A DNA stretch of 64,000 nucleotides from Entomortierella parvispora E1425 (GCA_020891255.1 BQFW01000009.1:682001-746000); one strand, 5' to 3'; positions 3,455 to 53,474 are shown, counted from the stretch's first letter. The notes: generated by a model not told the origin, from the sequence alone. A program made the numbers and translations.

Positions 3455-3721
3455 AATGGGATCTGGGAGTGTTTTCTGTGGTCGTTCGTCGCCCAGTTGG
3501 AATGATCCATCCTCAAACGATCTCTTCACCCATGCGTTGTTTGTTACATTGCCGCAGTGCAAAAAAAAAATCCGATTTTCAGTTTTTTGTCTGACGCGAA
3601 ATGATATGTCAGGCCGCAGTCGAGACTTACAGACACAGCCACATCAACGCGCATCTCTCTCTTTTTTCTCATTTCAGTCGTTGCACTCATCGACTCATTC
3701 TCTTTTCCACCAACAACCAAG

Positions 3722-4765: not shown

Positions 4766-4988
4766 AGGACGTAACATCATTTTAGAAAGAAAAAAAGAAG
4801 ACTGAGCCTTTCTCAGAGGTGCTCCTCCAAAAATAAGCTCTTGGTCCAATCTGTGGGCAGCCGATTGACACAGGTAGAAGGGATGTATTACAAGGTGGGG
4901 TCGTATCAACAACAATGCAGCAACTTGCTTCCTCTCAAGAAATCTGAAGATCATGAGGCACGATTTATTCTATCCGACAAAAAAAAAA

Positions 4989-6821
4989 TTACTTGACCCA
5001 GCCCATCAAGTTGGACTGTCGATCCTGAGCATGAACTTCTTCTTGCAGACGGCGTTCCATTTCAAACAGGGCCCTGAACATGTCGACTTCTGATGGGATG
5101 TTCATGTTCACAGAATCAATGACGGTCCGAACTGCGGCCAAGGACTCGGTCGTAGATGGGATTGGTCTGCCCGTCACCTGGTTCATCGCTCCCGCAGCAC
5201 CAGAGGTGGACGAAGTGGAGGGAGTCGAAGAAGTGCCATTGACTGGAGCAGCGGCAGAGGGAGTTCCTGCTACAGGTGAGGATCCGCTTCCAGTGGAAGG
5301 ATGTCCTGACTGAAGCAGCGCATGCTGCAAGAGATCTGTCTCCTGTCGAGTGACCGAAAGAGAAGATAATGCCCTCTCAGTTGACGATATATCCGCTGTC
5401 CGGGAAAGCGAGTCTGCCGAGAGTCCTGATGCAGCTGATGCTGGGGCTGCCGGATGAATTCGATGTGGGTTCAGCACAGTATCCATGGCGCCCTGCACAG
5501 AAGTGGGAGTGGACGGATCGCTGTCTGCTGATGCCGTCAAGGAGACTGCAGCTACTGCTGCTGCTGCTGCCGCGGTTGTAGCAGATGTTGATGATGACGA
5601 TGATGATGGTGTTGATGCAGTCTTGGCGGTCATTCTCTTTCCTCGAGTCTTGCGAGGCACACCCTTGCTCGTCAGCGTGAACGGGGCCAGTCCGACCGAG
5701 GACGAAGATGATTCACCAGCAGTATGTGCTATTGAGCGACCATGTTCTGCATCTGTGCTCCTCTCTCCAGCGGTATTCTCGTCTTGATCGTCCATCTCGT
5801 GGTCTACCAACATATCATGGTTGTCGCGCAACATCCTGTTAGCCAGTCCTTGTTCTAGCAGCGAGGCATTGCTCGAGAACGGTGCTATCCCGGGCGGCAA
5901 GACCCTTGAGCCGATATTGTTGCTGTTGCTGCTACTGGCGTTCCCATTGGTGCTGCTTCCTGCAACAGTATCCACGTCCATGTCCATCTTTGAATCTGCG
6001 CCAGCATTCTCGCTGCCTTCCCCCTCGTTTTCTCCTTCGCCACTATTTTGACCCAAGATGTCCATGAGTCGAGCACTCTCCTCCATGAGCGAGGCCATGG
6101 AGACCGTCCCAGGGGCGTTCAAAGCCGTGCCGATAAACATGTGTCGCTTTGTAAAGCCAGAGACCCAGCCGTTCGAGAAGCTCGGGGTCTCGGTCTCCTC
6201 TCTCCCAGGGATACTCCGGATATATTCCGCCATCTCTCTGGCCTTCTCGATAATCATCTTGTAAGAGACATGGAGGTTCCTGGCCTGACACTCATGGACC
6301 CAGACCACCAAGGCGTCCTCCAGCTCTAGACAGAGGACTGCTCGCTTACGTTGGGCTTGCAGCTCGGGCTCCGTCATGGCGTTGTACCAGTCTTGTTTGG
6401 CTAAGATCCGAGAAAGGGTTCCCATGGCTGGTTTCCGAGCCAGATTAAACTCTTCTTGAGCCCAGATCCCGAGGTCCTCCAGTGTGAGCTCAGGGTTGGA
6501 GTGCCGCTTTCGACAGATCTCTTTTCGGTAGGCGTTCGTGAGGATGACGTTCCGCCCTGTAGACCGAGGTCCTGGCATTATGGTGGCCCGAGCGGACCGA
6601 TGGTGCCTTGGAGAAGCAGGCGGACGAGGTGGCTGCACTGGTAACTCCTGAGCAGGAGCAGTAACCGCTCCAGAAGTGGCCAGGGGTGGATCTTCATGCT
6701 GAATGACCAGGTGCTGTGAACGCAATGGGTCCATCGGGGTCATGGAGGCATAGCCAGTAGCAAGGTCTTCCTGCGGTGCTTGGCTCTGACCTTTGGTCTG
6801 GGAAAGTCGTCTTGGTGGCAT
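4989..6821 (-). CDS. CENP-B/Tc5 (pogo-derived) double-HTH DNA-binding protein without a recognisable DDE domain
   Basis: HTH1 is LTNAYRKEIC...LTLEDLGIWAQEEFNL...TLSRIL. HTH2 is RKRAV..LELEDALVVWV...VSYKMIIEKAREMA...FSNGWVSGFTKRH. Low-complexity sequence and a short C-terminal helical segment follow. Likely ATG at 6821 (MPPRRLSQ). Confidence 0.8.
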   Translation of the reverse strand: MPPRRLSQTKGQSQAPQEDLATGYASMTPMDPLRSQHLVIQHEDPPLATSGAVTAPAQELPVQPPRPPASPRHHRSARATIMPGPRSTGRNVILTNAYRKEICRKRHSNPELTLEDLGIWAQEEFNLARKPAMGTLSRILAKQDWYNAMTEPELQAQRKRAVLCLELEDALVVWVHECQARNLHVSYKMIIEKAREMAEYIRSIPGREETETPSFSNGWVSGFTKRHMFIGTALNAPGTVSMASLMEESARLMDILGQNSGEGENEGEGSENAGADSKMDMDVDTVAGSSTNGNASSSNSNNIGSRVLPPGIAPFSSNASLLEQGLANRMLRDNHDMLVDHEMDDQDENTAGERSTDAEHGRSIAHTAGESSSSSVGLAPFTLTSKGVPRKTRGKRMTAKTASTPSSSSSSTSATTAAAAAAVAAVSLTASADSDPSTPTSVQGAMDTVLNPHRIHPAAPASAASGLSADSLSRTADISSTERALSSLSVTRQETDLLQHALLQSGHPSTGSGSSPVAGTPSAAAPVNGTSSTPSTSSTSGAAGAMNQVTGRPIPSTTESLAAVRTVIDSVNMNIPSEVDMFRALFEMERRLQEEVHAQDRQSNLMGWVK

Positions 6822-7149
6822 GGGTGTCTTGGGTTTCGTCGCGCCCTGGCTAAATGAGTGATGGGTGGCAGATGAGTGGGGAGACAGGAGACGAATGGAG
6901 GGATGTTCCGAATCTGGAGGGTGGTCCTGCCGACTGGTGGACTGATCACGTGATTTTTCCTTTTTTTTTTGGGTGGTCGTGCCGTGCTTCGTCGCTTTTG
7001 GCAGGGCTGAATGACCATGCTCGCCAGTTCGCAGTTTTGACAAAAAAAATCGACGGCCAGTAGAATGAGGATTAAAGAATATCCTCTAAAGAAATGTGGC
7101 AACCAAGACGATAAAGGTCGCGTCTTCACTTTCAGGCTGACAAAGGGTC

Positions 7150-9248
7150 GCCTTTTCACTCTACTGAATGAATTCCACGGCGCGCTCCTCATCTCCATAA
7201 AACCGGCTTGGGTACCAATCGAACACTATAAAGTGTTTTTCAAAGCGACGAGCGACATTGGCAAGCACAACCGTGATGAATCTAACCACGAGGAAATCCA
7301 GTGTAAGGAGGGGGAGGTTGGTTGTGAAGAACGACCACGCAAGGAACATGTCAGAAAAATGTAATAGATAGAGTAATGGAGGGATGAGGTGAGGATGGAC
7401 AACGAAAAAAGAGGAGACGGGTGTGCGGAAGATTGGGTGTTGTTATGATCTTGTGGATGGTAAAGGGCTGCCAGTGAGGAGTGAGATTATTACACCCTAA
7501 AATTATGGAAAAGGCACCGTATGTTGTGCGGGGAGGTGCATGACATACACGTATGGTCATCTCATTGATTGAGTCTTTCTTTCCTTTTGGTTCCCCAAAT
7601 GTGGGACCAGGTAGACGGTACAGTGAATGCGGTGAAGAGGAAAATCAACCCAATTGTTATGATACCCAAGGGCGAAAAGGTGAAGGGTGAATGGGCAAGA
7701 GTATGAACGGTGAGTGAGTACAGGTGCAAAGTTGGGGATCATATGGCAGAGTTTTAAACGTCCACAATTTGATGGAACATCTTCCTTATTGCTCAATGAC
7801 ACGACGCAAGATGTCTTTTTAATAGTTCAGAGGGTGTGCATGCTCTTGTTTTTTGTTGATATCATTGAAGAAAAGCTCTCCGCCAGGGATGCCAACAACT
7901 GTTCGGCCTCTTGGTCGTGCAACAGGTCCAGCGTTCCCTCTGGGGAAAACCTTGACCTTATGTTCTCTAGGATCTTCCCTGATGGAGACACAAGGTCCTG
8001 GGGCCCCAGATCCTCCATCCTGAGGATGATCCCACCCCCTGTCTCCCTCGACCGTAACCACATCGTGTAGAATATCGATGCGTTTGGCACACCCCGGAGC
8101 GAGAGCGTAAAAATGGTGACGGGCATTTGGGAGAGGGCGCTGCACCCCAGCAGGCCTGCTCTTCGGGTGGTATAGGTTGCCTTGTGCCCAAAGTGGGACC
8201 GAACTTGTGCGAGTCCCAAGACATCCTCGGTCAAAAGGCCCTCCTCCTGCCGAGCCTTCGATATGAGCAACTCTGACCGCTCAAGGATCGGGAATCTACC
8301 ACATCTCGAAGGCCCGATCTTGATGCGACCATCGTGTTCACCGGCGGTAATGAGGTAGTTACGGGATCGCACGCCGATGATGAGGCGAGGGTTGCCATGA
8401 CCGTCGGAAAGGTGACGCATCTTCAGCCTTCCTGGATATTGGGTGGTTTTCGCGTTGGTGGGTACACTTGATGGATTCGCCGTCAGAGGTTCTGCATGTG
8501 GGTCTTTTCTAGGGTCACGGCAGTACCCCTCGATACACCGAATAAGGAGACATGAGGCGTCGGTTTTGATCATTGCTCCTACCAAGCGTTCAAGCGCATA
8601 AATACCGCCTCCTTCTAAGCACTTGATGTCGTCCTCACTTGGCCGAGCGTGATTCTCCGAGATGGCCATGCTTGACTGACTAGCAGGGTCGTTGTCACTT
8701 AGGCTGATCTTTTGTACCAAGTATCCAAGCTGTATGACTTCACGCAGCTGTGATTCTGACAGGTCCGGAGTAGTGACCCCGAATGTCCCAAAGTCCTTCC
8801 GGTGCTTTGCGACAATCTGATAAGAACTTGACCGCATAGCTTTGACAGTAGATCGAACAACGTCCAGAGGCCGATCTCCACGTATTTCTTGTAATAGTTC
8901 CTGTGTCGGTCTTCTTGGAGTAATGGGTGTTTCATCGGCATCGGATGAATCCTCTCCACTCTCCTCTTCAGATTCTGGATCGGGCGAATCGTGCTTTCGT
9001 CTTTTGCCCTTGGCTGCAGCACTCATGATTCCTGACTCTGCGGCCTCCTCGTCGTGAAGAGCATAGTGACGACGGGCAGAGCGTCTCGCCATGCCCCGGC
9101 TACATTCAGGGCATCTGACTTGCCATATCTTTGGATCAACTCCGTCCTCAGGGATTCCCAAAAAGACCACAGAGTTCCCTGCCCCATATCTTATGCGACA
9201 ATCCCCTGCCTGGATCGGGAAGGACACGAAGGAAACAAATGCATTCAA
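7150..9248 (-). pseudogene. Degenerate hypothetical gene with an N-terminal C2H2-like finger, possibly mobile-element-associated
   Basis: 473-codon ORF containing CPECSRGMARRSARRHYALH and an acidic tract. The same frame resumes after a single in-frame stop near 7827 (ORF 7557-7802) and then fragments further. Confidence 0.4.
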
Positions 9249-9448
9249 TGAGTAACAATGCTTTGCTCATTTCCGCTTGTCTTATGGGACATCAACTACA
9301 TCAACTCACCTGAATTTCACCCATGCTTACGATCCAATAGAGTGGATAGCACGAATGCAGGAAGTACGAGGGCACAGAGAGAAAGCAGCGCGGATCAGTG
9401 AAATATTGAAATCGCGTATATTTATCACGTGATTAATATTCTCGCGTG

Positions 9449-9620
9449 CGGTCCGCATGCACAACTGTGATCTGCGCTCTTGCATGTGACGCCACCAATC
9501 TTTTCACTGTAATCTGTTTTCCAGCGGTCCACATGCACAACTGTGATCTGCGTTCTTGCATGTGACGCCACCAATCTTTTCACAGGCACCCACTGTGATC
9601 TGTTTTCCTGCTGTCCACAT
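9449..9620. repeat. Direct repeat, ~76-bp unit, about 2.2 copies
   Basis: CGGTCC(G/A)CATGCACAACTGTGATCTGCG(C/T)TCTTGCATGTGACGCCACCAATCTTTTCAC occurs at 9449 and 9525. Copy 2 carries a ~10-bp insertion, and a partial third copy starts near 9611. Confidence 0.9.
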
Positions 9621-10499
9621 TCTCACATGCAAAAAGAAATTCTGACCCACCTCTTCGTCAGTAAAAGTCTCGCGGAGGGGTGTCTATTCTAGTGCCAAGC
9701 TTTTGTGGATCGCTGTATCACCGTGTTAATGTCATTCCGTTGCACATACTGGACCCGATGCGCAACATTCCATGGCGAACGGTGGAGATAGTGGCGCCGC
9801 TGACCCACTCCATGGTTAGGACCCTCCAGACTAAATGACAACCAGCAAACTGTCGTGGATTTGCCTCATAAAAAATGCAATGGGGAGATTGGGGGAAGTT
9901 GTCTTTGCCCCGTACTTCTTTCCTACTATATCGTCGCCTCTGCTTTTGCTATACGGACATTGGTTCCATACGAGCAGGCGAGAACCCTTTTAGGAGGCCC
10001 GGAAAAGAACACAGATACAACCCACAGAGCCTTTATTTCACGAAGATGAGCTCTTTTGGCTCAGGCGACGAGCAAGAGAAACTTGATCTCGAAGAGAATG
10101 CGCCCGCAGGGACCAGCTCAAACTTTCAATACCTAGGGCGTGGGACAGCACAGACGGGGGCTGCTGGTACCACCAGAGCGTCTTTCGAACACGATCAGCC
10201 CAGGCCCTTCTACACCCGAAACGCAGCATTTCCTCCACAAAGTGCACGTCACGTGCCATTTGAGTCCATCGCTGCGCTTGTGAGGCAAGTCTGCCCTGAA
10301 CCCTCTGGAGCAATTGGGGCTGGCTCAATGGAAAAAATAAAATATAAAAACAATGATATTTGTTTTCTCCTCTTTTTTTGTTTTTTCCTTTCCTTCCTTA
10401 TCCTTTCCCACCCCTTCAGCCCGTCCCTCATCCACTAGCCCGCCGCAAGTGTCAGTCAGTCTTCTCAAGCACCATCAAGTAAAGGCAGATCATACAAGC

Positions 10500-12236
10500 A
10501 TGGCCACTACATCAACCTCAGAAACATCGGACTCGACAGATCCGCAGCCACCACAACGCACGTCCGTGATTCGCTGTCTGGAAGTAACGGAGCTCCGTCA
10601 ATGGATATGCCGATCCCTACACGCCCAGGACATTATCGCGTGCATGTCCGTGAGCAAAAACTGGTCTGCCCTCTTTGCCCCGATCTTGTTTGAATCGATT
10701 AGCTTTGAAGAGTGGGGCAAGCCTAGAAAAGCGGACGCCTTTATGGCCAGGAGTGTCGCCACGGACCGTCGAAATCTGCCCTTGATCCTTCACCTCCGAA
10801 CCTGTCACCCCCAAGTCTTGACTCACCTCTTGCGCGAATGCGAAGAAGTTGGACCCAACAAAGAACCAAAGACTCTTCCCCTTAGAAGCTTGAGCTTAGA
10901 GTTGGACAGGACCTACCACAGTTGGATTCAACCTCACCTTACCAACATTCTCTTGTCTATGGTCAAAACCTTTCGATCCTTGCGTCAACTGGAGCTCCAA
11001 CTCACGGGATCTTTGACGATTCATCGACAGACTGCTCAACTGCCCTCATACCTGCCCAGTACAACCCTGTCAGATCTCTCGGTCGATTTTGAACTTTGTA
11101 AAGCCGATTGCGTGTCCTGCAGTCAAAAGCCCGTCCAGGATCTCGTCCGATCTCTGGAAAACAGGACAGAAGCCTTCCCGTTCTTGAACATGATATCTCT
11201 GACCATCGCTCGGTGTACTGTGGACGGGACGGGGGGTCAACTTTGGAGACCGCTAATCCAGAGCTGCCGAAACTTGGTGCGCTTCGTCTTTCCTTTACAG
11301 AACCGAAGTCAGGATTTAGAAGCCACCCGCATGTTGTTTGAGACTGTCCGCAAATGCTGCCCAAAATTGAGGGAACTCGACCTCAGTGCCAAAAACAGTG
11401 ATTACCTCACTCAGGAAGACAGAAAAGACGAACGCGACCTTGCCACTCAATTCGGCACCACACCTGCCATCACAGATGAGTTGCTGGCGATCTGTCTGGA
11501 TGGTTCGGAAATGGGCTGGACTAGCTTAGATATCTCATCCTTGCCCTGTGTGGGCCCTCGATCCATTGAGGTGTTGTTCCGACACGTCCGGACCCTACGT
11601 TCTCTTTTGTTCCCCAATACCGCGGCCTTTTCGAGCGCACAGTGGCAGCTGTTCATGTCCCGTTGCCCCGCTCTGCAGATCTTTCAGGTCCAATCTGTTC
11701 CAGTCCGTCGAAATGAACGGCCACAATACCCTCAAATTCATTTCATCCCCAAGGATTTCAACCCAGAGACATGGCCTTGCCAGGGTGTCCTTCAGGAAAT
11801 GAACTTCAAGATTTGTGGAGTGCAGCATGTTACGGACAAGGAGGTGGAAGTGCACCGAGAGGTTTTCCGAAGACTGAGCTGTTTGTTTGCTTTGAAAAAG
11901 CTTTCGCATCAGTATCTAACCGACGACGCTGGCAAGACCCTGCCAACGTCTCAGAGTCCTTATTACCACGTCGAAGAGATGGATGAGCCAGGTTTAGCCT
12001 ATTGGCGAAGGACGGGTCTGGAAGAGTTGGCCAAGTTGACACAGCTGGAGGACTTGGATATCAGAGACACAGCCGGCTACCCTTCCGAGGACGATCTTCA
12101 GTGGATGCAGAAAACCTGGCCGCAGCTCAAGACCATGCGACAGTATACAGCGTCGTACGCTCATGCAGATTCATTGAAAATGTGGATGTCAACGAAATGG
12201 AACAACGTCGATGTTATCGAATACATGGCACGATAG
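10500..12236 (+). CDS. F-box-like/RNI-like LRR protein
   Basis: N-terminal CLEVTELRQWICRSL...IIACMSVSKNWSALFAPILF. C-terminal WPCQGVLQEM, VFRRLSCLFALKKL, GLEELAKLTQLEDLDI and DLQWMQKTWPQL motifs are shared with the other F-box/LRR-like loci here. The start may lie upstream at 10046. Confidence 0.75.
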   Translation: MATTSTSETSDSTDPQPPQRTSVIRCLEVTELRQWICRSLHAQDIIACMSVSKNWSALFAPILFESISFEEWGKPRKADAFMARSVATDRRNLPLILHLRTCHPQVLTHLLRECEEVGPNKEPKTLPLRSLSLELDRTYHSWIQPHLTNILLSMVKTFRSLRQLELQLTGSLTIHRQTAQLPSYLPSTTLSDLSVDFELCKADCVSCSQKPVQDLVRSLENRTEAFPFLNMISLTIARCTVDGTGGQLWRPLIQSCRNLVRFVFPLQNRSQDLEATRMLFETVRKCCPKLRELDLSAKNSDYLTQEDRKDERDLATQFGTTPAITDELLAICLDGSEMGWTSLDISSLPCVGPRSIEVLFRHVRTLRSLLFPNTAAFSSAQWQLFMSRCPALQIFQVQSVPVRRNERPQYPQIHFIPKDFNPETWPCQGVLQEMNFKICGVQHVTDKEVEVHREVFRRLSCLFALKKLSHQYLTDDAGKTLPTSQSPYYHVEEMDEPGLAYWRRTGLEELAKLTQLEDLDIRDTAGYPSEDDLQWMQKTWPQLKTMRQYTASYAHADSLKMWMSTKWNNVDVIEYMAR

Positions 12237-29569: not shown

Positions 29570-30976
29570 TTAATGATCTCTTTTCACAAACGAGAAGCCG
29601 TTCATGGTGACGCTCTTTAGTATTGGGAGTTCTTGAAGTCGCCTTTGTATGTCTTTGTTCAGGTTGCGGTCAATATCGCACGACTCTTTGCTTGGTATCC
29701 ACCGGGTTGTACTAGAACAACCAGCGGGCCACGTCTCCGACTTTTCACTTAATCTCCTCATGAATGAAAGGCCGCTCAGTAAAAGATTCTCCAACATATG
29801 GACTTTCCACTTGGATGAGAATATCATCACCGAGTGTTCATAGCTGAACGCTGACAACCTTTTGAAGCGCAAATCCTTTAATGAAACAAGGCTCGACGTA
29901 GACAGCAGCTGGACCAACCACTCTGCGCTTTCGCTGGTACTGTCCCATGTTCCCATGTATTCCAGATTGAGAACTTGGATGGCTCTTCCTTCCAGGACAG
30001 TCCATTCCATGAATGCATCCGACAGCTCGTAAAAAGAAGCTTCTAGGTGTTGGACCTTTCCTTGTTCTGGACCGGCCAGAGCAACGAGTGCATTGAAGCT
30101 CATACAGATTGTTCGAACACCTCTGTTTCTTGCTTGAATCGAAAAAGTCCTGAACCTTAGACAGAACTTTCTTGCCCAGGACACAACTTCTTTCGATTGA
30201 GGATGGTTCATCAGTCTGGGAACATCATCATCCCATATGCCCTCAACGGCGACTGCGATCCTTTCAAGGTCAGGGCAACAAAGAATGAGTTGTTCAAGAA
30301 ATCCATCGCAGAGAACAGCTTGCGGAGGACCGCTGACCACTAGGATCCTTATGGCAAGCGGTGTGTTCATGACTGCAGGTGGAGTGCTCTGATTGCTGGC
30401 CTCTGAAATTGTCAGATGCAGAAATGACAGGTGCAAAAACAGAGACAAAATCCCGTGCAGTTGTTGGAAAGTATCATAGTGCATTCCATGGAGTGAAATG
30501 CGTGTAACGGTAAAGACGAACGGGCGCGCCATCTCAACTGCTCTTCTCAGATGCGTACTTCTATCTTGATTATAGAAATACAGATCCAAGCAAGTTACAG
30601 TTCTTACCCTCGAAAGCAGCATCTCCAGGGGTTGGTGGCAGTCGTACATCACAATCTTCTCGAGACGAGGATAAGAGACTTCGTTCAACGTGAACCGAGG
30701 GATCGTGCTGAAGGAACAGAGCTGTCTGACATACATTGTGTTCCTCGCCAGGACATGAGCGGGAACGTTTTGCATCGCGTCCAAAGAATAAACACTCCAA
30801 ATGATCGGGAGAAAAGCATGGTACCATGTCTTGGAAACTCGACTCAGCCGAAGGAGGGTGTGAGCAGAAAAAAAGAAGTTACCGTTATCCACGGTCCACA
30901 GAGGGAGGCATTTACCGACAAGTGAGACAATCTCGGGAGTCGTAAGAGCGAGCGTGGATCGAAATGCAATGGACAT
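29570..30976 (-). CDS. F-box-like/LRR protein (468 aa), intact member of a four-copy local paralog family
   Basis: LALTTPEIVSLVGKCLPLW...LLRLSRVSKTWYHAFLPIIW; C-terminal IQRRLQELPILKSVTMNGFSF. Same architecture as the loci at 44034, 50314 and 52114. Confidence 0.8.
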   Translation of the reverse strand: MSIAFRSTLALTTPEIVSLVGKCLPLWTVDNGNFFFSAHTLLRLSRVSKTWYHAFLPIIWSVYSLDAMQNVPAHVLARNTMYVRQLCSFSTIPRFTLNEVSYPRLEKIVMYDCHQPLEMLLSRVRTVTCLDLYFYNQDRSTHLRRAVEMARPFVFTVTRISLHGMHYDTFQQLHGILSLFLHLSFLHLTISEASNQSTPPAVMNTPLAIRILVVSGPPQAVLCDGFLEQLILCCPDLERIAVAVEGIWDDDVPRLMNHPQSKEVVSWARKFCLRFRTFSIQARNRGVRTICMSFNALVALAGPEQGKVQHLEASFYELSDAFMEWTVLEGRAIQVLNLEYMGTWDSTSESAEWLVQLLSTSSLVSLKDLRFKRLSAFSYEHSVMIFSSKWKVHMLENLLLSGLSFMRRLSEKSETWPAGCSSTTRWIPSKESCDIDRNLNKDIQRRLQELPILKSVTMNGFSFVKRDH

Positions 30977-31392
30977 GTTGGGCTGAGAAGCTGGGGCAGG
31001 AAAGTGAAGAAAAAAAAGATTTTTTTTGTTTTTTAGTTTTTTTTGGTGGCAATCGCTGGCGACATGGAAGTCGACATCAACGCTATTGCTGCTCTTTTCA
31101 GGTGCTGAACATCATTTAATCTCTTCGAGGAGAAATAAGGCGAGATGAAGGACTTGCAGCTATGATCCTCACAAGCAGATCAGACGGTCGGATCTTTCAC
31201 TCTGCTCCTTGCTCCCTTAAACGGAGCTCATCTTCCAGGTCTTCGTAAATGAGAGGGAACCGGGAAAGGTTAAGTACGATAAATGTCAAGACAATTAAAC
31301 ACGAAAAAATTGGCGCGTACAGACACCATGGTCAATTTCAGCAAGAGGGGACCAGCACTGTCAACAGGAGAATATCTTTGTTGCTTCCACTT

Positions 31393-42832: not shown

Positions 42833-44033
42833 ATATCGCCCATCCCCACATAGATCTGTTTTTTTATTGTCGTTTCCCACATATCCCTCAACAATGCATT
42901 GCTTCACAAAATCTTGCTTTACGCCACCAATTCGCACTGTCACGTGTTGTGACCGTGCCTTTTTCACTTTCTCCGCATTTGGACCATGGATGACCTCCAG
43001 TCAAGAGTCCCTCATCCTCGGCTCCTTAATCTCTTTGACAAAGCGCTTGTCAAAGGACCCTCACTCCTTCCCGCATTACCCTCGATACCTTCGTGCCTCT
43101 GTATTTCTACTTTTCACTCTAAATTTCTATCAATTACCGCCGCATTTCTACAAAGGCAGACTGAACAAGAAACAGCGCCATGCTACCCCATCTTCAGGGA
43201 GGCCATGCCCGAGCTTTTCATGAGCACTTTTCTCCCTCTTGTCCGTCAAGCTGTCCAGGCCGGCGCGGGCCCCCCGTCAACTCATTTTCTAATTACCCGC
43301 ATCCTCCTCCGACCATGATACCTTCGGGCCGACACCCTCACCTTGGTAAGTAAAGTTTTTTTTTTTTTTTTTTTCTTGCACTCGGATTCTTTGCGTGCCT
43401 TGCCGTGGCAGTGGGTTGAACGATATTGATCAATTGTTGGATCATGACAGCTTACAATGCTCAATTCTCTGTTTTATAGACGCCTCCAAACTGCATCCAG
43501 CATTTTCCGGATTGTTCTACCAGCAACGAAGGAATATACATCATCATTCGTCTCGACCACAGCCACCACCCCCACCACCGCCTCCCTCGGCAGTTCAGAC
43601 CTCAATACATGGAACGCCGCCACCACCTCCCCTTACTCTGTCCATGATGGATGACCCTGCAAGGACGTCACCAATCTTTTACGGGTATTCTGCGAACCAG
43701 CAGGACAAGGCCAAGATGTGAACAAATCGATCTTTCCCGAGGCGAAAAAGGAAATATCGCCACCAAAAAAAATGAGAAATCTATTGGAAAGCTCCGCTCC
43801 CGGACCACCTTCTCCTCGATTAGACTTCTTTGGCTTCAGGACTCCGACTCCTCTCAACCCTCCAGTCTTTCCTTCTCTCTCGTCTCTTCTTTTTCCCTGT
43901 ACAATAGACACTAATAAAATGTGGTCAACAATCTGTGGTCTCTTTGAACGGGGGCGGTTTGGTCAGGTCCAGTGGCACAAAAACTTGGGGAGTTCTTTTT
44001 CTTTCATTCATTTACCGTTCATTGTCAAAGTCC

Positions 44034-45430
44034 ATGTCCAGGCCAAAATCATCTCCATACACAGTCGTCCTTGAGACTCCCGAGATTGTCGCACTCATCG
44101 GCGAATATCTTTTTCTCTTGGGCTCGAGACATATGGCCAATTCGTTTTATCCAGGAAGCAATCTTGCGACCCAGTCGAGAGCCTTCTACGTGGTATCACG
44201 CGTTCACTCCAATCATTTGGCGCGTCTACTCGTTGGGCAACATGGAAAACGTTCCTCGCCATGTTCTTCAAAAGAATACAGTGCACACTCGACATCTCGA
44301 CTCCGTTTATTTCGTCCCACTGTTCGCCATAGAAGAGGCTTCGTTTCCTCGACTCGAACATGTCTCCATGGTTGAATCTTATCGTCCGCTTGGACCGCTC
44401 CTGCAGAAGGTCACAACGGCGACCCACCTGGATTTGCTTTTTTTTCAGCGACGATAACCGACTCGGGCGGTAGAAAAGATACCTACTTGAGCTTCAGTCT
44501 CACGCACTTGTTTATCTCTGGACTCCATTGCGACAGCTTTTAAAAGTTATAAGGGACCTTGTCCAACCATCCCCACTTATCTTCCGTGTACTTGAGCATG
44601 TAACCGTTTTACGGCGAAAAGGTCCCTCCACTGTCGTTTACCCATCTGCCTCTTCCGATCAAGGACTTGGAGATCACCTATCCCAAAACTCTTATTCCCA
44701 CTTCTCTCAGATTCGATCAATTTAGCCAGCGTTGTCCTGAACTAGAGAAACTCGTTTTCACTTCCCAAGAGGTATTCGACGATGGGTTGGCTCAAGAGAT
44801 GAACAATCCTGGTGTGCAAAAGATTGTGGCCTGGGTTCGAGAGTCTTACCCTCGGATCGACGCTCTGTCGATGAGAGGAATGACCTCAAAGCTGCGTTCA
44901 GGACATTTGTGATACGATACCTCATTGGCCGTGCGCGGTCCTGATCAAGGAAAGGCCGTCCAGCTGAAGGCCTCTATGATATTGCTACCAGATGCCTTCA
45001 TGTCTTGGCTAAACCTGGACAGAAAGACTCTTCCAGGTCATCGATCTAGAATTTCGCTACCAAGGAAAACTTTTCCCGCACAGGGCTGAATGGGACGGTT
45101 TGCTATCGACTCCGGATCTCATGTCGTTGAGGGATCTGCGAATTAAGTGGACAGGGAGATTCAAGGCCACAGAGGTAGCCCTCGTCTTTGCATCGACATG
45201 GAGCTGGCCTCAACTAGAAAGTTTGGCATTGAGTGGCCGTTCAGGGGCAATACAACGAATCTATCGCCTTTCCTGCCATTAGCGAAAGCGAGATCCACTG
45301 GAGACCTAATGAGAAACTACATGCAGGCCACTGTTTGAACGGACAGCTCCAACAGCGACTTCAAGAACTGCCAAAACTGAAACCCCTACTATGAACACCA
45401 TTCCCTTCAAAAAAAAAAATGAACGAATTC
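44034..45430 (+). pseudogene. Disrupted paralog of the 29570-30976 F-box-like gene
   Basis: VVLETPEIVALIGEY, then a frame change to WYHAFTPIIWRVYSLGNMENVPRHVLQKNT...ASFPRLEHVSM. Several later frameshifts and stops; ends in QQRLQELPKL/NTIPF fragments. Confidence 0.8.
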
Positions 45431-46686
45431 CCTTCCTTGGTTCCCCTCTTTTCGTTGCTCTAAAATTGATAAAAGCTGGCCTGCATGTAGCAGATTCAAC
45501 TTGTTTTGTCTTCCAATCTAGTGGAGAGGCGATACTATCAACCTGGGGTCATATGAGAGATTCCAAAAGATTGTTTATCTTTCTCGCTTCTTGAACGCCA
45601 TTATTTTCAGCCTCTGTTTACTGGCGGTGCCTACAGAGAAGATGACTCCTTTTGCTATGCTAGTCTCATTGACCTTCTTTTGCGTGTTGCAGGTCGTAGT
45701 GGATCGGGCCATGATCTATTTTGGTGCTTATGGATTCGTGAATCATTCGGAAGCCTGGGCCACATGTGCACGGTTTAGTATTGATCTGGATAGCCTTTTA
45801 CCCTCTCCACTCGGCCTCTGATCCAGAGGCACATCCCGATCGATCTCATTAGCAGAATCAGTTGTGGATTTAAATTCCACTCTAGATGGTCAGGCTGCTA
45901 CTAGAGGAGGAGGACCTGGCAGGAGACATGGCAATACAAGTGCAGTCAGTCTTGTGTGTCCTTCCAACTCGGTCCATGCTCGTGCAGATGCACCCCGAGC
46001 AAAGCAACCTCGTGCTTCCCTCCACAGGCAATGTCGCATTTATTGCAGCCTGGTTTCCTGAGCTCCATGACAGAGAGGAATGAGTGTGTGCGGAGGTGAA
46101 AGCCAGAGGGGCCGGTGGAGAACTAGACAATGGGTTACGATGCTAGGAAGATTACCCGCTTTTGGAATTCAGGAAACCGCGCATTGCTCTCAGCCCATTG
46201 GGCGCAATTTTCAGAGTAAGGTTGCGGTGGCACCAAAACATGTGGCCCGTGTGTTGTTTTTGTGCACGAAGCTCTTTGTCGCGATCATACCAGCAGACGT
46301 GCGGACGAAACCATATTAGTGTGATGCCTTGTTGAACGCTGGATGTCATGATCCTTGAACAACCTGCCTGGATGGTGATGAGGTCGAACTGCACCTTTTG
46401 AAAGTGGATTGTCGGCTTTTTTGCTGATTTTTTTTTTTTTTTTTGTATGACAAGTCCTTTGGACCATGCAACAAGAGAACGACTTTTTTTTTTATTTCAT
46501 TTGATCCATTAATAAGTGATGCAAAGGGCTATTGAAGCTATCGTTGCCTTGTGTTGTTGGTTCGTCGATCGAGGCTGTTCTTGAGTACCTATTCTTACCT
46601 GCACTCTTGCCAAGGAGAAAGTTGAAAAGAGGAGGAAGAACGGGAAGGCAAACTCACCATGATCATTGCATTCAAAAGCTCGAGTT

Positions 46687-46898
46687 CTTGATCTAGTCCT
46701 TGATCTAGTCCTTGATCTAGTCTGTGAGAAAGGCACCTCCAACAACAACGCCAGTTTATTTCATATTTGCATCCTGAAAATCCTGATCGTCCTGGAGTCC
46801 CGCGTGAAAAGGATGAAAACATTAGTAAGTTAGTATGTTAGTAAGTTAGTAAAACACCCCCAACGACAACGCCAGTTTATTTCATATATGCATCCTGA
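46687..46898. repeat. Cluster of short repeats: CTTGATCTAGTC x3, a 39-bp direct repeat, and an 8-bp TTAGTA(A/T)G array
   Basis: 12-mer x3 at 46687-46722. 39-bp copies at 46739-46777 and 46860-46898 (2 mismatches). ATTAGTAAGTTAGTATGTTAGTAAGTTAGTA at 46821-46851. Confidence 0.9.
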
Positions 46899-47241
46899 TC
46901 TTGACCTAGACCTATCAAGAAAAAAGAAAAAAAAAAAGAAACTGGGACGGAGGAGAGAGTGAGTGCCAAGCAGCTTGTTCTTTTTGATCAGAGAGCGAGA
47001 GACTGTGAGACAGAGGTAGGAGACAAGGAGGCAAGAGTGCGAGTAAGTGAGAAAAGGAGCGAGAAAGGAGCGAGAAGGCGAGATCAGTGAGAGCAGACGT
47101 CCAGCAACAGCAAAGGGAACAAACTTGCCGTGGAAAGGCGGCGTGGTGAAAGGTGGTGGTGATGGTGGTGAAGATGAGAGCGAAGGGTTGAGGAGAGTGA
47201 AAAGTGGAAAGTGAAGAGGGGAGTGAAGGGTTGGAAGAGAA

Positions 47242-48331
47242 GAGAAAAGCGAAAAGCGAAAAAAAGGCCAGAACCTTTTGTGCCGCGCAACTTTTGCCAA
47301 GAGGACGAAAGGAGGGTGACGACAACGCATTGTCGCGTATTCAGTCGATGCGGACTGAATGGAGGAGAGTGGCCCGGGTCCTCGTTGTCGGGAGGAGGAA
47401 AGACACATGGTGAAAGAAAGGGAAAGGGAAGGAAACGATCAGTGTGTGCGCTGATTGGTTGCTTTTGTATGAAGGGCTGGAAAGACATTGAAAAGACATG
47501 CAGAAAATGCGGTTGATAGACATTCAAAGCAGGGAAAGATGTCAAGGGATAGAGGGGGAGAGCTGTCGTCTTTGCCCTCACCATCATCGTTACCATCGCT
47601 ATCACTATTGCTATGAAGGATGGAAGGAGGAACAGAAAAAGTGCGTCAGAAAAAGAGAGAGAAATGAAAAAAAAATGGACATGGCCTTTGTGCAAATGCA
47701 TTCTTTCTCTTTTCCACCCAGCTTTCGTTCCTTCATCACGATGAGAATGGCCATGATGATGGCAACAGCGCAGTTACAGTGGTCCTTCTCCATACTATCT
47801 CAGTCCTTTATTGCTGTGAGGCTTTCCAAGAGCGAAGGAACTATGGGGCCGGAGAGGGAAAGGGAAGAGGGACATGGCCACCATGTAAATGTCTCCACTC
47901 TCCACCTGTCTTTCTCTCTTTTTCTGTCCCTCTTTTTCTGTTCCTCCTTCCATCCTTCATGACAATAGTGATAGCGATGGTAACGATGATGGTGAGGGCA
48001 AAGACGACAGCTCTCCCCCTCTATCCCTTGACATCTTTCCCTGCTTTGAATGTCTATCAACCGCATTTTCTGCATGTCTTTTCAATGTCTTTCCAGCCCT
48101 TCATACAAAAGCAACCAATCAGCGCACACACTGATCGTTTCCTTCCCTTTCCCTTTCTTTCACCATGTGTCTTTCCTCCTCCCGACAACGAGGACCCGGG
48201 CCACTCTTCTCCATTCAGTCCGCGTCGACTGAATACGCGAGCAATGCGTTGTCGTCACCCTCCTTTCGTCCTCTTGCAAAAGTTGCGCGGCACAAAAGGT
48301 TCTCGCCTTTTTTTCGCATTTCGCTTTTCTC
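47242..48331. repeat. Near-perfect inverted repeat: arms 47242-47660 and 47913-48331 (419 bp each), 252-bp spacer
   Basis: Manual alignment of arm 1 to the reverse complement of arm 2 gives about 11 differences, including two compensating 1-bp indels (~97% identity). Confidence 0.97.
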
Positions 48332-48740
48332 CTTTCTCCTTTCTCCTTCTCTTTCTCTCCCCGACCCTTCACCTACCTCTCCCTCTCCATCTGGCACCAC
48401 CACAAGCAACAGGACCACCATCACCAACACCTTTCACCTTCACCGTCACCTTCACCTTAACATTTTCATCCTCACAATGTTGCTTCACGATAAGTTTGTT
48501 CTGTTTGATGATGTTGAAGCCATCTGTTCTTACTAATCTCGACTTCTCGTTTTTTTTTCCTTCTCCTTCTATCACTTACTCGCACTCTGGCTTTTTCCTC
48601 TTTACTCTCATTCTTTCCTCTCATTCTTTCCGGCCCTCGCTCTCTGTCTCTATGATTAAGATCACCAAGTCGGCTCGTACTGACCTTCACTTATGTCCTC
48701 TGCTTAGCCTTTTGCTCCTTTTTTGATAGGTTTTAGGTGA

Positions 48741-49547
48741 GGACATGGAAGACCTGGACATGGACAGGGAGTTGGAGGACATGGAAGAGTTGGACATGGA
48801 CAGGGAGTCGGAGGACAAGGAAGAGTTGGACATGGACAGGGAGTTGGGGGACATGGAAGAGTTGGACATGGACAGGGAGCTGGGGGACAAGGAAGAGTTG
48901 GACATGGACAGGGAGTTGGTGGACAAGGAAGAGCGGGACATGGACAGGGAGCTGGGGGACAAGGAAGAGTTGGACATGGACAGGGAGTCGGAGGACAAGG
49001 AAGAGTTGGACATGGACAGGGAGCTGGAGGACATGGAAGAGTTGGACATGGACAGGGAGTTGGGGGACATGGACAGGGAGTTGGGGGACATGGACGAGTT
49101 GGACATGGACAGGGAGCTGGAGGACATGGAAGAGTTGGACATGGACAGGGAGTCGGAGGACAAGGAAGAGTTGGACATGGACAGGGAGCTGGTGGACAAG
49201 GAAGAGCGGGACATGGACAGGGAGTTGGAGGACATGGACAGGGAGTTGGAGGACATGGAAGAGTTGGGCATGGACAGGGAGTTGGAGGACATGGAAGAGT
49301 TGGACATGGACAGGGAGTTGGGGGACATGGACGAGTTGGACATGGACAGGGAGCTGGGGGACAAGGAAGAGTTGGACATGGACAGGGAGTCGGAGGACAT
49401 GGAAGAGTTGGACATGGACAGGGAGCTGGAGGACATGGAAGAGTTGGACATGGACAGGGAGCTGAAGGACATGGAAGAGTTGGACATGGACAGGGAGTTG
49501 GGGGACATGGAAGAGCGGGACATGGACGGGGACATGGACAAGTTGGA
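48741..49547. repeat. Minisatellite: 36-bp unit GGACA(T/A)GGAAGAGTTGGACATGGACAGGGAG(T/C)(T/C)GG(A/G/T) with 21-bp truncated variants, more than 20 units
   Basis: Read directly from the sequence. Translations are DMEELDMDRELE (+), SMSNSSMSSNSL (-) and PCPCPTLPCPPT (-). Confidence 0.97.
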
Positions 49548-50313
49548 CGACTTGGGACGACTTGGGACGTACTGATCATGGTGAGTTGCATTTCCTCTCT
49601 CTTCATCCTTCTCTTCTCCCTCCTTAGCAAGAGTGCAAGTAGAAATAGGTTCCAAGAACAGTATCCAATCGACGAGCCGACAAGACATCGCAGCCATAGT
49701 CCGATATCCCTCCAATTAAATGAATGATCAAACAAAGAATACTCTTTATGATGGTTCAGTTGACTTAATAATTTTTAAAAAAACAAGAAACAAAAAAAGA
49801 AAAGGAGGAAGAGGCACGTATTGCTACACAACGTACCCATGCCCTTGACTGGCAGTAGCAGTCCACTCAAGCATATACATAACTTGCATTGTACTCTCGC
49901 CCCAATGTGGTGGACTATCCATTCATAATAACTCCTGCACAACGAAGAACTGGCCTTCGAACGAAACGTATAGATTTGGTTGTTCGTAAACGTCTAAGTG
50001 GCGCATGCCGGGAATTATGGAACCTTACAATAAATTGGTTCAACACATTGGCTGATATCCCCATTGTGAACTTGGAAACTTGTTTCTCCTCCCTCTACTC
50101 TATGCCGGTCACTTTCATGTTGTTCCCACCATGTCAAAGATAGAATTCATCCATCCAAAAAAGCAAGCGCAAATAAATTTAGTGGCGCACAATGCCAAGG
50201 GGCAAAGAGACGTGGTTGCCACCATCAAAATAAAGGCAGAGGGATGGGGAGGAGAGGTGGACACAAGGTTGATTTTCTTTTTTCCTTCCACCAAACTCCT
50301 TGACTCAACTTCC

Positions 50314-51721
50314 ATGTCCAACCCATCGCCCTCCACACTCGTTCTCGAAACTCCCGAACTTGTCGCCCTCATTGGCGAGTTCCTTCCTCTCTGGTCTGCT
50401 AACCAGTACGGGGGGTTCAACATTTCGCCGACATCCCCCCTCTTGAGGCTCAGCATCGTGTCTAAAACATGGCACCGTGCATTCGTCCCAATCGTTTGGC
50501 GCGACTACTCTTTGGACAACATGAGATGCGTACCCAGCCACATTCTCCAGAGAAATACTGTTTACGCTCGGTCTATATGTTCCTACAATTGCATTCCAAA
50601 GTTCTCGCTAACAGATGCATCATTCCCTCGACTCAACCCATGTCACCATGGGGGACAATCGTTGTCCATTGGATCAGTTACTCTTGAAGGCGACCTCTGT
50701 TATCAAACTGGATGTGGCCTTTACTAGCTTCAACAACATCAGACCACTTGAGAGGGCAATGGAAATTGTAAGCTCGTTCAGGTCCGTCTCACGTCTTTCA
50801 CTCCAATATTTGGACTTGGAAACCTTTCAGCAACTACACATGATCCTGTCCTGTGTCCCTCACCTGCATTCCTTGAGGCTGAAGTTAATGAGGGACAAAG
50901 TCATCTCTCAACCACTTGATACTCATTTGCCACTTCCTATCAAGAATCTGGAGATCGAACTAGGAAATTACAATACACCTCTTGCAGGAGATTTATTCTA
51001 TCACTTCATGCAATGCTGTCCTGAACTGGAAACAATGGTGATCGTTTCTAGTTCGTCACTCTTCGACAACATCCCTAAATTGATACGCCATTCTTGTAGA
51101 AAGGAGCTTCTTCCATGGGCCCGGCAATTTTGTCCAGGATTCAAGGCACTTTCAATGCAAGGAGAAGGCAGCCTGGACAGCTGTACCAAATATGTCGCCC
51201 AAAACGCCTCCGTTGCTGTGTCTGGCCCAGATCGAGGTGAGATCGTGCACTTGAAGATTTCGTGGATCTGTTATCCGTTCATGTCATGGTTAGCACTTGA
51301 CGGAAAATCGATCCAGGTTCTTGATATACAATACCGCTTTGCTGATTACCAAGACGGCGAGTGCTCTCGATACCTGTACCAGCTATTATCTTCTCAACAT
51401 CTCGTATCGTTGAAGGAACTGCGATTCAAGTGGCTTCTTTGCTTCGATGCTGAAAGATGCAGGATCGTCTTTGGGTCCCAGTGGGGCTGTGTCCACCTTG
51501 AAAAGCTTTCACTGGGTGATTTTTGGTGGGGCTGGAAATTAGAAGAAGAGTCGACGATTATCCCCGAAGGTCGCCCTAGGACAACCCAGTGGAAGCCCAA
51601 GAATGAAAGACCTATTATTGAGGAGAACTTGCATGAGTTGATTCAGCAGCGTCTTCAAGAGTTACCGAAGTTGAAGAATCTTACGTTGAATGGCATTCCT
51701 TTCTTAAAATATCATGTTTGA
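50314..51721 (+). pseudogene. F-box-like/LRR paralog with a single frameshift (pseudogene or sequence error)
   Basis: LVLETPELVALIGEFLPLW...LLRLSIVSKTWHRAFVPIVW...ASFPRL, then a +1 shift near 50635 into HVTMGD...IQQRLQELPKLKNLTLNGIPF. Confidence 0.75.
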
Positions 51722-52113: not shown

Positions 52114-53474
52114 ATGTCTGCCACATCCTCGTCCACACTTGCCCTTGAAATTCCTGAGATTATCGCACTCATCGACACATGCCTGCCCATCTGGGACAAC
52201 AAGAATAGTTTTCTCCAGGAGCGATTTTGCGACTCTGTCAAGTGTCCACTACTTGGTCTATTCTTTGGACAAAGTGAGAAACATTCCTGGCTATATCCCT
52301 CAAAAGAATATGGTTTACACTCGGTATCTCCAGTTATAAACTGCCAACCCGCCGTTCTCCATTGAGGAAGCTTCATTTCATCGACATGTCATCACATATG
52401 GCTAGCATCCCACACAGGAGCTGTTTCTTCGAAAGCTGACGACCGCGACGATCGTGAAGAGCCTGGAACTGGTTTTCTCCTATGGAAGACACGAAGAGCA
52501 CATCAATTGGGCGACGGATATGGCAACTTCACTTAGCGCAAACCTCGCCCGCCCTTCAATCCGTGGGTTTTATGGCAAGGCCTCATAGAGTTTATACAGA
52601 TTTTATCTTGTCTACCTCGCTTGTCTCTTTTGCGCTTGGACATATCACGGACCGATTTCCAAAACTTGCAGTCAGGCACCAGTTGCAAAGGTGCGCCTTC
52701 CCATCAAAGATCTGCAGATTGTTTACAATAATTATTGGAAGTATTGGAAGTTCACCCACAGCAATGCCTTTCTAGAGCACCTTATCCAGTGCTGACCTCA
52801 TCTGGAAAGAATCCTCTTGATCACCGAGGGGTTATCCGGAGACGATATTGTCAAGAGGATGAATGAGTCTCTAATGCAAACGAGAGTAGCCTGGGTTCGA
52901 AAGTACTGCCCCTGGATCAATACTCTCTCACTGCAAGGATCGAACTATGATACCTTAATTGCCGTATCTGGTCCGTACCAAGGAAAAGTGATTGATTTTG
53001 GAACCTTCATGACCTCTTTGTCCAACGAGTTCATGCCATGGCTAAAGCAGGATGGAGTGGCCATTCAGGCACTCGATCTGGTGTTTTATCACAACAGCGA
53101 TTATCCCTATCAGACCCAAAATGGCGCGACTTGCTGTCGACTCCGGATCTTGCGTCACTGAGGGACTTACGAATTGCTAGGCGAGGTATGCTCCAATCTG
53201 AACGCTTAAAACGCATCTTTGAATCGAAGTGGAGCTATCTTCAGCCGGAAGGACTTTCGATCAACGGCCTGTCAAGGATACTTCGAGAGTACAAGAGAAA
53301 CAGAAAACCAGCGGCTGCTCTTGCTGGCAGTCAAGGGGCCGCATACTAGAGACCCAGTGAGACAGCGCTTTCGAGAATCGTTTGAACAAGCTGGTTCAAC
53401 AGCGGCTCCAAGAGCTGAGGAGGTCGAGGGCCGTTACCTTGAATACTATTCCTTTCGAAAAAGTGGACACTTGA
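52114..53474 (+). pseudogene. Disrupted paralog of the same F-box-like family
   Basis: LALEIPEIIALIDTCLPIW, then multiple frameshifts. Fragments RVAWVRKYCP, VSGPYQGKV, LLSTPDLASLRDLRI, and terminal VQQRLQELRRSRAVTLNTIPF. Confidence 0.8.

Follow-up and report, generated by a model that had tools for sequence, protein, structure and literature searches.

Foldback-type mobile elements occur in several copies per genome and are characterised by long inverted arms, unequal in length and with internal tandem repeats, that enclose a variable central loop. The foldback (FB) transposons of Drosophila and similar elements follow this plan and are likewise present in more than one copy. hpRNA endo-siRNA loci and young plant miRNA genes are born from inverted duplications and consist of a long, near-perfect inverted repeat whose loop measures a few hundred bases. 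Both conversion between the arms of palindromes and fold-back inverted duplications with a spacer are established (PMC8600007, PMC8327919, PMC3907307). Here, a palindromic locus of the soil fungus Entomortierella parvispora E1425 was analyzed. In our reading, to which we assign a probability of roughly 0.55, it is an old inverted duplication of a non-coding unit whose inner arms have been converted, and a structural by-product without a function of its own.

The window, i.e. the whole 64-kb stretch of DNA that was analyzed, derives from contig BQFW01000009.1 of assembly GCA_020891255.1. Within it, positions 46428-49798 form a single collinear inverted duplication of about 3.4 kb (3.37 kb) around a 252-bp spacer (47661-47912), and the locus is situated between two paralogues of a gene family specific to the lineage of E. 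parvispora E1425; the wider interval is bounded by the MRPL1 and CNOT11 genes. A repeat search detected the arms at 47333-47660 and 47913-48240 with 98% identity, and weaker collinear pairs reach out to 46587-46629 and 49608-49650. When the reverse-complemented left half was compared with the right half by BLASTN, an inner block (47660..46899 vs 47913..48743; 837 columns, 79% identity, E = 0) and an outer block (46714..46428 vs 49521..49798; 293 columns, 66% identity, E = 3e-24) were obtained. Global alignment scored 176 and 35 standard deviations above shuffled sequences. The collinear blocks and the shuffle scores bear out the initial annotation, which had proposed one inverted duplication reaching beyond the obvious inner repeat; exact anchors of 15, 17 and 11 nt that it had listed are present in both arms. 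Its limits of 46452 and 49766 were slightly too narrow, as the similarity extends to about 46428 and 49798, where, read outward, it terminates in A-rich tails. The parts of the locus are listed in Table 1.

Table 1. Parts of the palindromic locus, with positions counted from the first nucleotide of the window.
Feature	Position	Strand	Remarks
Left outer arm segment	46428..46714	-	collinear with 49521-49798; A-rich tail at outward end
Motifs of the left outer segment, outward reading	within 46428..46714	-	TGATCATGGTGAGTT and GCAAGAGTGCA
Left variable segment	46715..46898	-	position matches the minisatellite of the right arm
Left diverged "leader"	46899..47235	-	+ strand 74.5% purine
Left inner arm, homogenised stratum	47236..47660	-	CTGATTGGTT at 47451-47460
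Perfect 245-bp tract	47366..47610	.	mirror 47963-48207; zero differences between the arms
Spacer (loop), 252 bp, unique	47661..47912	.	between the arms
Right inner arm	47913..48337	+	AACCAATCAG at 48113-48122, mirrored at 47451-47460
Right diverged "leader"	48338..48743	+	+ strand pyrimidine-rich; TTGATAG at end
Minisatellite	48739..49532	+	36 bp, 21.9 copies; Tandem Repeats Finder score 926
Annotated 276-aa acidic ORF (MEDLDMDRE... repeats)	48745..49575	+	called gene L001 8098-8928
Right outer arm segment	49521..49798	+	A-rich tail at end

The arms are of unequal length (1233 bp left, 1886 bp right). The right arm is longer by 650 bp because the 36-bp minisatellite (x22) stands where the left arm has 184 bp. 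This minisatellite, which has a higher-order period of 165 bp, is present in the right arm only. The variable segment of the left arm contains a 12-bp repeat (x3.3), an 8-bp repeat (x3.9) and a direct duplication of roughly 45 bp; the Tandem Repeats Finder entries of this arm are located at 46683-46722 and 46822-46852. The two halves of the spacer show weak similarity to each other, and the spacer is essentially unique. An inverted 14-nt motif within each arm was also considered and is, by estimate, at chance level.

The number of copies in the genome was approximated by the word depth of short-read contigs from the same strain, which is a proxy only. Single-copy contigs have a word depth of 74-79. 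A contig that matches the spacer exactly at 47633-47775 and crosses the junction of left arm and spacer has a depth of 216, and a variant of the spacer with 4 changes has a depth of 152 as compared to about 80 for the version of the window. Depths of 283, 150 and 138 were recorded for a contig of the inner arm, for a right-leader variant of 469 nt with 10 mismatches and 14 gap letters, and for a near-exact contig of the left leader, respectively. According to this proxy, the spacer, the inner arms and both types of arm may each be present in about two additional copies outside this locus, with 94-100% identity to the window in the spacer and the inner arms. For one of these copies, the similarity extends to the left beyond the end of the palindrome to at least 46220, and a loose-end consensus of this copy still resembles the window on that side. 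Two pattern scans of metagenome DNA, with the inner arm and with an outer motif of two anchors as queries, gave no hits.

The multi-copy nature of the inner region also bears on the reliability of the assembly, which was built with SMARTdenovo, Nanopolish and Pilon (PMC8759367). It appears very improbable to us that Nanopore assembly and short-read polishing created the palindrome or made its inner arms nearly identical. Polishing reads from a multi-copy region map to several places, and the only short-read contig at 47514 differs from the window. However, a chimeric fold-back read cannot give diverged outer arms, the locus lies deep inside a 1.88-Mb contig, and Illumina contigs from this strain match exactly over the spacer, its junction with the left arm and both flanks. 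In addition, a second sample carrying the same species label contains pieces of both arms and of the spacer at 90-95% identity. Judged by these sequence comparisons, the palindrome is real and not an assembly fold-back, although the identity of its inner part could be inflated by Pilon with multi-mapping short reads, given about six copies of this region per genome.

The inner arms are identical at 413 of 426 positions (96.9%; 47236-47660 vs 47913-48337) and include the perfect 245-bp tract (47366-47610/47963-48207). Outward from the spacer, 90% identity over the first 50 bp is followed by the perfect tract, by sequence with 96-98% identity and then by a sharp fall. Near 47236/48337, identity drops from 97% to 73% over about 50 bp. 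In ungapped columns, each of the two diverged segments has 73% identity; transitions and transversions are about equally frequent, and there are 101 and 35 gap columns, the 101 belonging to the alignment of the left leader to 48338-48743. The profile along the arms is therefore stepped and not graded, with three strata of 100%, about 95% and 73% identity within 1.6 kb. The best-matching tract is located 50-300 bp away from the spacer and does not adjoin it. Of the earlier statement that identity is highest at the centre and lower outward, the higher identity of the inner as compared to the outer parts thus holds; neither a peak at the very centre nor a gradient was found. When the 13 differences were placed at random, a clean tract as long as 245 bp arose in 29 of 200,000 placements (p about 1.5e-4; 4e-3 when clustered differences are counted as single events). 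The stepped identity and the perfect tract lend support to the earlier proposal that the inner ends were homogenised.

On sequence grounds, the identity pattern of the inner arms needs a later homogenising event. Of the features of a conversion palindrome, inverted arms around a unique spacer are present, and a tract-like arm identity above the age of the duplication is found for the inner 425 bp only. The 245-bp tract would represent a third, youngest stratum, which fits repeated conversion tracts. A simple conversion gradient initiated at the centre does not fit exactly, with the perfect tract lying at a distance from the spacer. The GC content of the homogenised part (0.48 vs 0.45-0.50 in its surroundings) shows no enrichment, and the lack of a signature of GC-biased conversion counts weakly against conversion. 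Alternatively, the inner stratum could stem from a second event, a younger duplication by fold-back or a repair, in the middle of the old palindrome: a break near its centre would be followed by fold-back priming, and about 425 bp of one arm would be re-created as a copy of the other. This would account for the abrupt 97%/73% boundary, and the unique spacer is as expected of a fold-back loop (PMC3907307). However, a single event should result in uniform divergence of the inner arms, yet the 13 differences avoid the 245-bp tract, so that at least one further event would be needed. Moreover, the other copies share the spacer and the inner arms at 94-100% identity, and the inner stratum therefore predates or spans the copying of the locus, which argues against a younger fold-back. 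We thus regard such an event as improbable. Two further routes to the palindrome were discarded, since retroposed copies joined head to head would not yield stepped identity and an inversion by twin priming does not duplicate the same segment. Conversion remains our preferred explanation for the inner stratum, and it is suggested by the identity pattern of one genome.

The sole annotated gene in the palindrome is the 276-aa ORF of the right arm, which had been overlooked in the initial annotation. This orphan ORF is simply the minisatellite read in its open frame. The variation between its repeat units is mostly non-synonymous. A codon-usage score favours the annotated frame by 0.67 bits per codon, but was discounted because common codons for Asp, Glu and Met make up nearly all of this frame. 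The ORF had no relatives in a word-indexed search, an exhaustive search returned unrelated low-complexity repeat proteins only, and its exact sequence is absent from the cluster table. At the matching place of the left arm, a stop follows after 3 codons. A long ORF in the annotated frame exists in the right arm only, and the comparison of ORFs confirmed the earlier view that none is conserved between the arms. A Pfam search with 11 ORFs from across the palindrome (E up to 0.01-0.1) identified no family, neither a transposase nor any other domain, with one RepSA match far below the cut-off. Likewise, no homologue was found for a 315-aa ORF that spans the spacer and the right arm, and the adjacent gene P0001 has no relative but itself at E <= 1e-10. 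A divergent pair of protein-coding genes with a shared promoter was rejected, as there are no homologous ORFs in both arms, no Pfam matches and no homologues.

Furthermore, the locus was assessed for signals of non-coding transcription. The arms could represent divergent spliced non-coding RNA units, or read-through of the inner repeat could give rise to hairpin dsRNA and siRNAs. Both arms carry outward-facing motifs containing CCAAT, followed by pyrimidine-rich tracts and A-rich ends, and the genome annotation, for which RNA-seq hints had been used, includes a gene on the right arm (PMC8759367). The capacity of the inverted repeat to form long dsRNA is also in line with such a role: a hypothetical read-through RNA from 47300-48275 is predicted to form a ~360-bp stem (-807 kcal/mol, z = -52.7). 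The shared promoter- and splice-like features noted earlier, i.e. AACCAATCAG, a pyrimidine tract ending in TTGATAG and ATCATG|GTGAGT, are each present in both arms, but column shuffles argue against taking them as evidence of constraint. In the inner arms, motifs are identical only because the entire tract is identical. In the diverged parts, the exact matches of 17, 15, 13 and 11 nt do not exceed in length those obtained by column shuffles, in which the longest run was reached in 1614 and 2250 of 5000 cases for the two segments. Exact islands are thus at chance level for 73% identity, and nothing points to constraint. The gene called on the right arm is an orphan minisatellite frame with mostly non-synonymous unit variation and without a counterpart in the left arm. 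The search of Rfam (E up to 1) gave sub-threshold noise from miRNA models on the hairpin only and no family above noise, arguing against a transcribed RNA unit, and no tRNA was found in the arms. On balance, we consider a transcription-based role quite unlikely.

We also considered that the locus could be the decayed copy of a mobile element of the foldback type that is non-autonomous. The arms are unequal and contain tandem repeats (1233/1886 bp; 36-bp x21.9 on the right, 12-bp x3.3 and 8-bp x3.9 on the left), and, to judge from the short-read contigs of E1425, the loop and both arms may occur about twice more in the genome. The termini argue otherwise: conservation is lowest at the outer ends, which pass gradually into A/T-rich sequence and have 66% identity (73% ungapped) over their 290 bp, and it is highest in the interior. 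In 150-bp zones at both ends, no target-site duplication was detected, the longest shared direct word being 7 nt and lying inside the arms, in agreement with the initial annotation. No transposase or other domain speaks for mobility. Within the 64-kb window no second copy of the palindrome was found, only low-complexity matches, and the homology of another copy past the left end of the palindrome is better explained by segmental duplication than by an element that ends at its tips. The initial annotation had named many dispersed copies with target-site duplications as the mark of an ordinary foldback transposon; about two extra copies are suggested by the contigs, and no such duplication was found at the ends of the locus. 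An element of this type thus seems rather unlikely. A MITE (under about 800 bp, short TIRs, high copy number) was rejected on account of the 3.37-kb length, the lack of a target-site duplication and the low copy number, and the earlier opinion that a simple MITE fits poorly was accurate.

We therefore favour an inner-arm-converted inverted duplication, in which the succession of events, the role of conversion in homogenising the arms and the absence of a function are inferred. An intergenic unit of roughly 1.2-1.9 kb that does not code for protein would have been duplicated in inverted orientation, and the arms would then have diverged to about 73% identity with many indels, while in one arm a 12-bp seed repeat may have expanded into the 36-bp minisatellite. 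Later, and probably repeatedly, recombinational copying would have overwritten the inner roughly 425 bp, with the opposite arm or one of the roughly two paralogous palindrome copies as the donor, resulting in the 97% stratum that contains the perfect 245-bp tract. The 252-bp spacer would prevent the formation of a perfect, unstable palindrome. The locus would thus be a by-product of a fold-back-type duplication and gene conversion. It is probably functionless and a member of a small repeat family; the argument for the lack of function is one from absence, in that signals of conserved coding and of known RNAs were not found.

More speculatively, and in our estimate with little likelihood, the locus may belong to a family of palindromic units of ~3-3.6 kb with spacers of ~240-250 bp that are scattered in E. 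parvispora and that constitute either a new foldback-like mobile element of the Mortierellomycota or hairpin-RNA loci feeding RNAi. If so, the kb-sized palindromes of this genome would reflect an active, lineage-specific process that forms or spreads palindromes. Neither palindromes nor foldback elements of Mortierellomycota were the subject of any paper found in our literature search, and the locus would be a case of small-scale concerted evolution inside a palindrome in a fungus for which no such case has been described before. If transcribed, the inner repeat would naturally give rise to dsRNA.

Overall, the locus resembles hpRNA loci in its long, near-perfect inverted repeat with a loop, which would yield dsRNA if transcribed through. 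In contrast to these loci, no evidence of a target gene was found for it, and its arms match nothing else in the 64-kb window. With FB transposons it shares unequal tandem-repeat arms and the presence of more than one copy. It differs from them in the lack of a target-site duplication and a transposase, in termini that are least conserved, in its approximately three copies and in the homology past the end of the palindrome. Like fold-back inverted duplications (PMC3907307) and rearrangements driven by inverted repeats in yeast (PMC10164571), it is arranged head to head around a short unique spacer and carries no transposon hallmarks. Those cases are recent and their junctions have been described, whereas the locus appears ancient and its junction has decayed, so that its mechanism of origin can only be inferred. 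Sex-chromosome palindromes (human Y P1-P8, primate and mouse X; PMC8600007, PMC8327919) range from 10 kb to Mb, are more than 99% identical over the whole arm and carry expressed gene families, whereas the arms described here measure 1.2-1.9 kb, are homogenised in their inner 425 bp only and contain no conserved gene, in a fungus without a sex-chromosome context. Nevertheless, both have inverted arms around a unique spacer and an arm identity far above the age of the duplication, which in the sex-chromosome palindromes is explained by intrachromosomal conversion.

The sequence between window positions 46428 and 49798 is a single inverted duplication, its arms measuring 1233 and 1886 bp. A repeat search returned inverted arms at 47333-47660 and 47913-48240 that are 98% identical and separated by a gap of 252 nt, together with further inverted pairs, weaker but collinear, that reach 46587-46629 and 49608-49650. 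When the left half was reverse-complemented and compared with the right half by BLASTN, two collinear blocks were obtained, the first pairing 47660..46899 with 47913..48743 (837 columns, 79%) and the second 46714..46428 with 49521..49798 (293 columns, 66%, E = 3e-24). The scores of the global arm-versus-arm alignments lie 176 and 35 standard deviations above those of mononucleotide shuffles. Thus, the initial annotation was right in extending the inverted duplication beyond the inner repeat, and every motif it named was located in the sequence. Between the two BLASTN blocks, the left arm carries a short segment with micro-arrays and the right arm a minisatellite; the 12-bp periodicity and the arm alignment suggest that these are the same segment, enlarged in one arm. 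Read outward, the left arm also contains at 46822-46852 (minus strand) 3.9 copies of an 8-bp repeat whose units resemble TTACTAAC; the array corresponds to the fungal intron branch-point consensus in tandem and has no counterpart in the right arm.

The 38.7-Mb genome of Entomortierella parvispora E1425 (GCA_020891255.1) was obtained from Nanopore and Illumina reads using SMARTdenovo, Nanopolish and Pilon (PMC8759367), and the palindrome is placed inside the 1.88-Mb contig BQFW01000009.1, of which the window covers about 682001-746000, not at a contig end. That it was produced by an artefact of assembly is hardly credible, since a chimeric fold-back read cannot yield diverged arms and short-read contigs likewise contradict it. 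In X1, a set of Logan contigs (41.7 Mb in total) apparently from E1425's own run, the flanks are matched exactly at 45200-45953, 45927-46224, 46240-46556 and 49567-51000, and the junction between left arm and spacer is bridged by an exactly matching contig of 143 nt (47633-47775). X3, a run from another sample carrying the same species label, likewise contains fragments of the two arms and the spacer at 90-95% identity. The structure is real and was correctly observed.

Features of the palindrome and of its neighbourhood (window coordinates)
Feature	Position	Strand	Remarks
Left-arm segment between BLASTN blocks			184 bp; 12-bp and 8-bp micro-arrays
Minisatellite	48739-49532		right arm, between BLASTN blocks; 36-bp x 21.9 units, 165-bp higher-order period
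Annotated gene, 276 aa	48745-49575		8098-8928 of the annotated record L001; sole annotated gene of the palindrome; open frame of the minisatellite
Paralogue 1	29582-30979	-	
Paralogue 2	44025-45388	+	unannotated; matches in pieces across changing frames
Paralogue 3 (P0001)	50296-51718	+	
Paralogue 4	52138-53462	+	unannotated; matches in pieces across changing frames

Counted outward from the spacer in steps of 50 columns, the arms agree at 45, 50, 50, 50, 50, 49, 48, 48, 36, 26, 32, 19, 36, 29, 30 and 27 positions. In the inner arms (47236-47660 and 47913-48337) 413 of 426 columns match, an identity that could be overstated through Pilon polishing, the sequence being present about six times per genome. 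All 13 differences lie toward the two inner-arm ends and leave a perfect tract of 245 bp between them; a clean tract this long arose in 29 of 200,000 random placements of 13 differences, and in 798 of 200,000 when the clustered differences were taken as 9 events. Farther out, the leader and outer segments are both 73% identical in ungapped columns, with about as many transitions as transversions and many indels. The profile is therefore stepped and not a smooth gradient, identity being 73% in the old stratum, about 95-97% in the young stratum and 100% in the youngest. The putatively converted inner part shows no GC enrichment. The initial annotation had described an identity that peaks at the centre and declines outward; the inner arms are indeed far above the outer ones, but the very centre is not the best conserved part: it is formed by the unique spacer, and identity over the first 50 bp of the arms is 90%. 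Its interpretation as an old duplication with later homogenised inner ends is supported by the strata and the non-random 245-bp tract. One younger re-duplication at the palindrome centre could in principle have made the inner stratum; we regard this as quite unlikely, because it leaves the perfect tract unexplained.

A further proposal was that the arms form a pair of spliced non-coding genes or an siRNA locus. For a read-through transcript, a stem of about 360 bp is indeed predicted (-807 kcal/mol, z = -52.7), but the sequence provides no evidence of constraint on the arms and leaves this functional reading unsupported and, in our estimation, unlikely. After exclusion of gap columns, the longest stretches of exact identity in the two diverged segments measure 17, 13, 13 and 11 nt and 15, 12 and 11 nt, and column shuffles equalled or beat the longest ones in 1614 and 2250 of 5000 cases, respectively. 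The blocks GTGAGT, GCAAGAGTGCA and TCACTTACTCGCACTCT common to both arms are what would be expected by chance at 73% identity, and the CCAAT motif lies inside the homogenised tract, where all positions agree between the arms; the shared splice-like and promoter-like motifs thus do not stand as a signal. None of the 11 ORFs across the palindrome matched a Pfam family, and an ORF of 315 aa that covers spacer and right-arm sequence had no homologue among 5.8 billion proteins. Rfam returned nothing on the palindrome beyond sub-threshold matches of miRNA models to the hairpin, and a tRNA search of the palindrome found none. We infer that the locus lacks a function.

The gene annotation of E1425 was made with AUGUSTUS guided by RNA-seq hints (PMC8759367). 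Within the 276-aa frame, the differences between minisatellite units are mostly non-synonymous (E/G/V/K, M/K, L/S, L/R). The ORF has no Pfam family, and an exhaustive HMMER search returned only unrelated low-complexity repeat proteins. At the matching position the left arm reaches a stop after three codons, in agreement with the earlier statement that no ORF is conserved between the arms. The codon score of the frame is high and carries little weight, as nearly all codons of the frame are common ones for Asp, Glu or Met. The GenBank protein is probably a spurious gene model.

Near-copies of the locus in the genome are indicated by the isolate's short-read contigs, from which their number was estimated, although summed word depth does not equal copy number. 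Against a baseline of 74-79 for long single-copy contigs, the spacer contig has a depth of 216 and the inner-arm contig one of 283; a spacer variant with four changes reaches 152 as compared to about 80 for the window's version. A right-leader-like contig of 469 nt (48302-48781; 10 mismatches, 14 gap letters; depth 150) does not represent the left arm, whose identity is just 73%, and a near-exact left-leader contig (46949-47107) has a depth of 138. In the simplest reading, the genome would contain the window locus and a sister locus in about two near-identical copies. The sister locus would share the spacer and inner arms and would possess arms of both the left and the right type, so that the arm asymmetry would be older than the copying of the locus. 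No second palindrome copy was found within the 64-kb window, and protein-based and pattern-based searches for further copies returned none. Multiple copies, as well as repeat-bearing arms of unequal length, would also suit a copy of a foldback-type transposon; this is the less probable explanation, as the termini are not conserved and, as already reported in the initial annotation, no target-site duplication flanks the palindrome. Furthermore, another copy matches the window to the right of 46220, and the 30 nt at its loose end are still similar to 46190-46219. The similarity thus passes the left end of the palindrome, which is more in keeping with a segmental duplication than with a tip-bounded element.

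In X3, contigs matching the 36-bp minisatellite have summed depths of 1,300-10,800 as compared to about 100 for neighbouring sequence, which may reflect strong amplification of the unit, or its wide distribution, in that isolate. A 162-nt contig from a further run, X2, joins position 49579, where the minisatellite block ends (…TGATCAT), straight to the pyrimidine tract preceding the block, at 48707. This hints either that the 873-bp module is tandemly duplicated in another copy or that repeat assembly has left a graph artefact.

An unnamed gene family with an N-terminal 'LETPELVALIGEFL' motif and no Pfam assignment has four paralogues in the window, and the palindrome lies in the 4.9 kb that separate two of them. 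For the member P0001, a search of 5.8 billion proteins gave no relative at E <= 1e-10. Paralogues 2 and 4 look decayed, judging from their piecemeal matches and missing annotation. The genes for mitochondrial ribosomal protein L1 and CNOT11 lie farther from the palindrome.

Fold-back inverted duplications with a spacer are a documented class of events (PMC3907307), and an old event of this type would have made the palindrome. Its arms would afterwards have decayed neutrally, a seed repeat would have been enlarged in one of them, and recombinational copying between the arms, possibly also with the sister loci, would have overwritten the inner ~425 bp more than once. We infer this order of events, and conversion instead of re-duplication. 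Inverted repeats that are closer together and less diverged interact more readily (PMC10164571), which would explain why the spacer-adjacent part alone was kept alike. Sex-chromosome palindromes are held alike by arm-to-arm recombinational copying (PMC8600007, PMC8327919), the same process as proposed here for the homogenisation of the inner arms.
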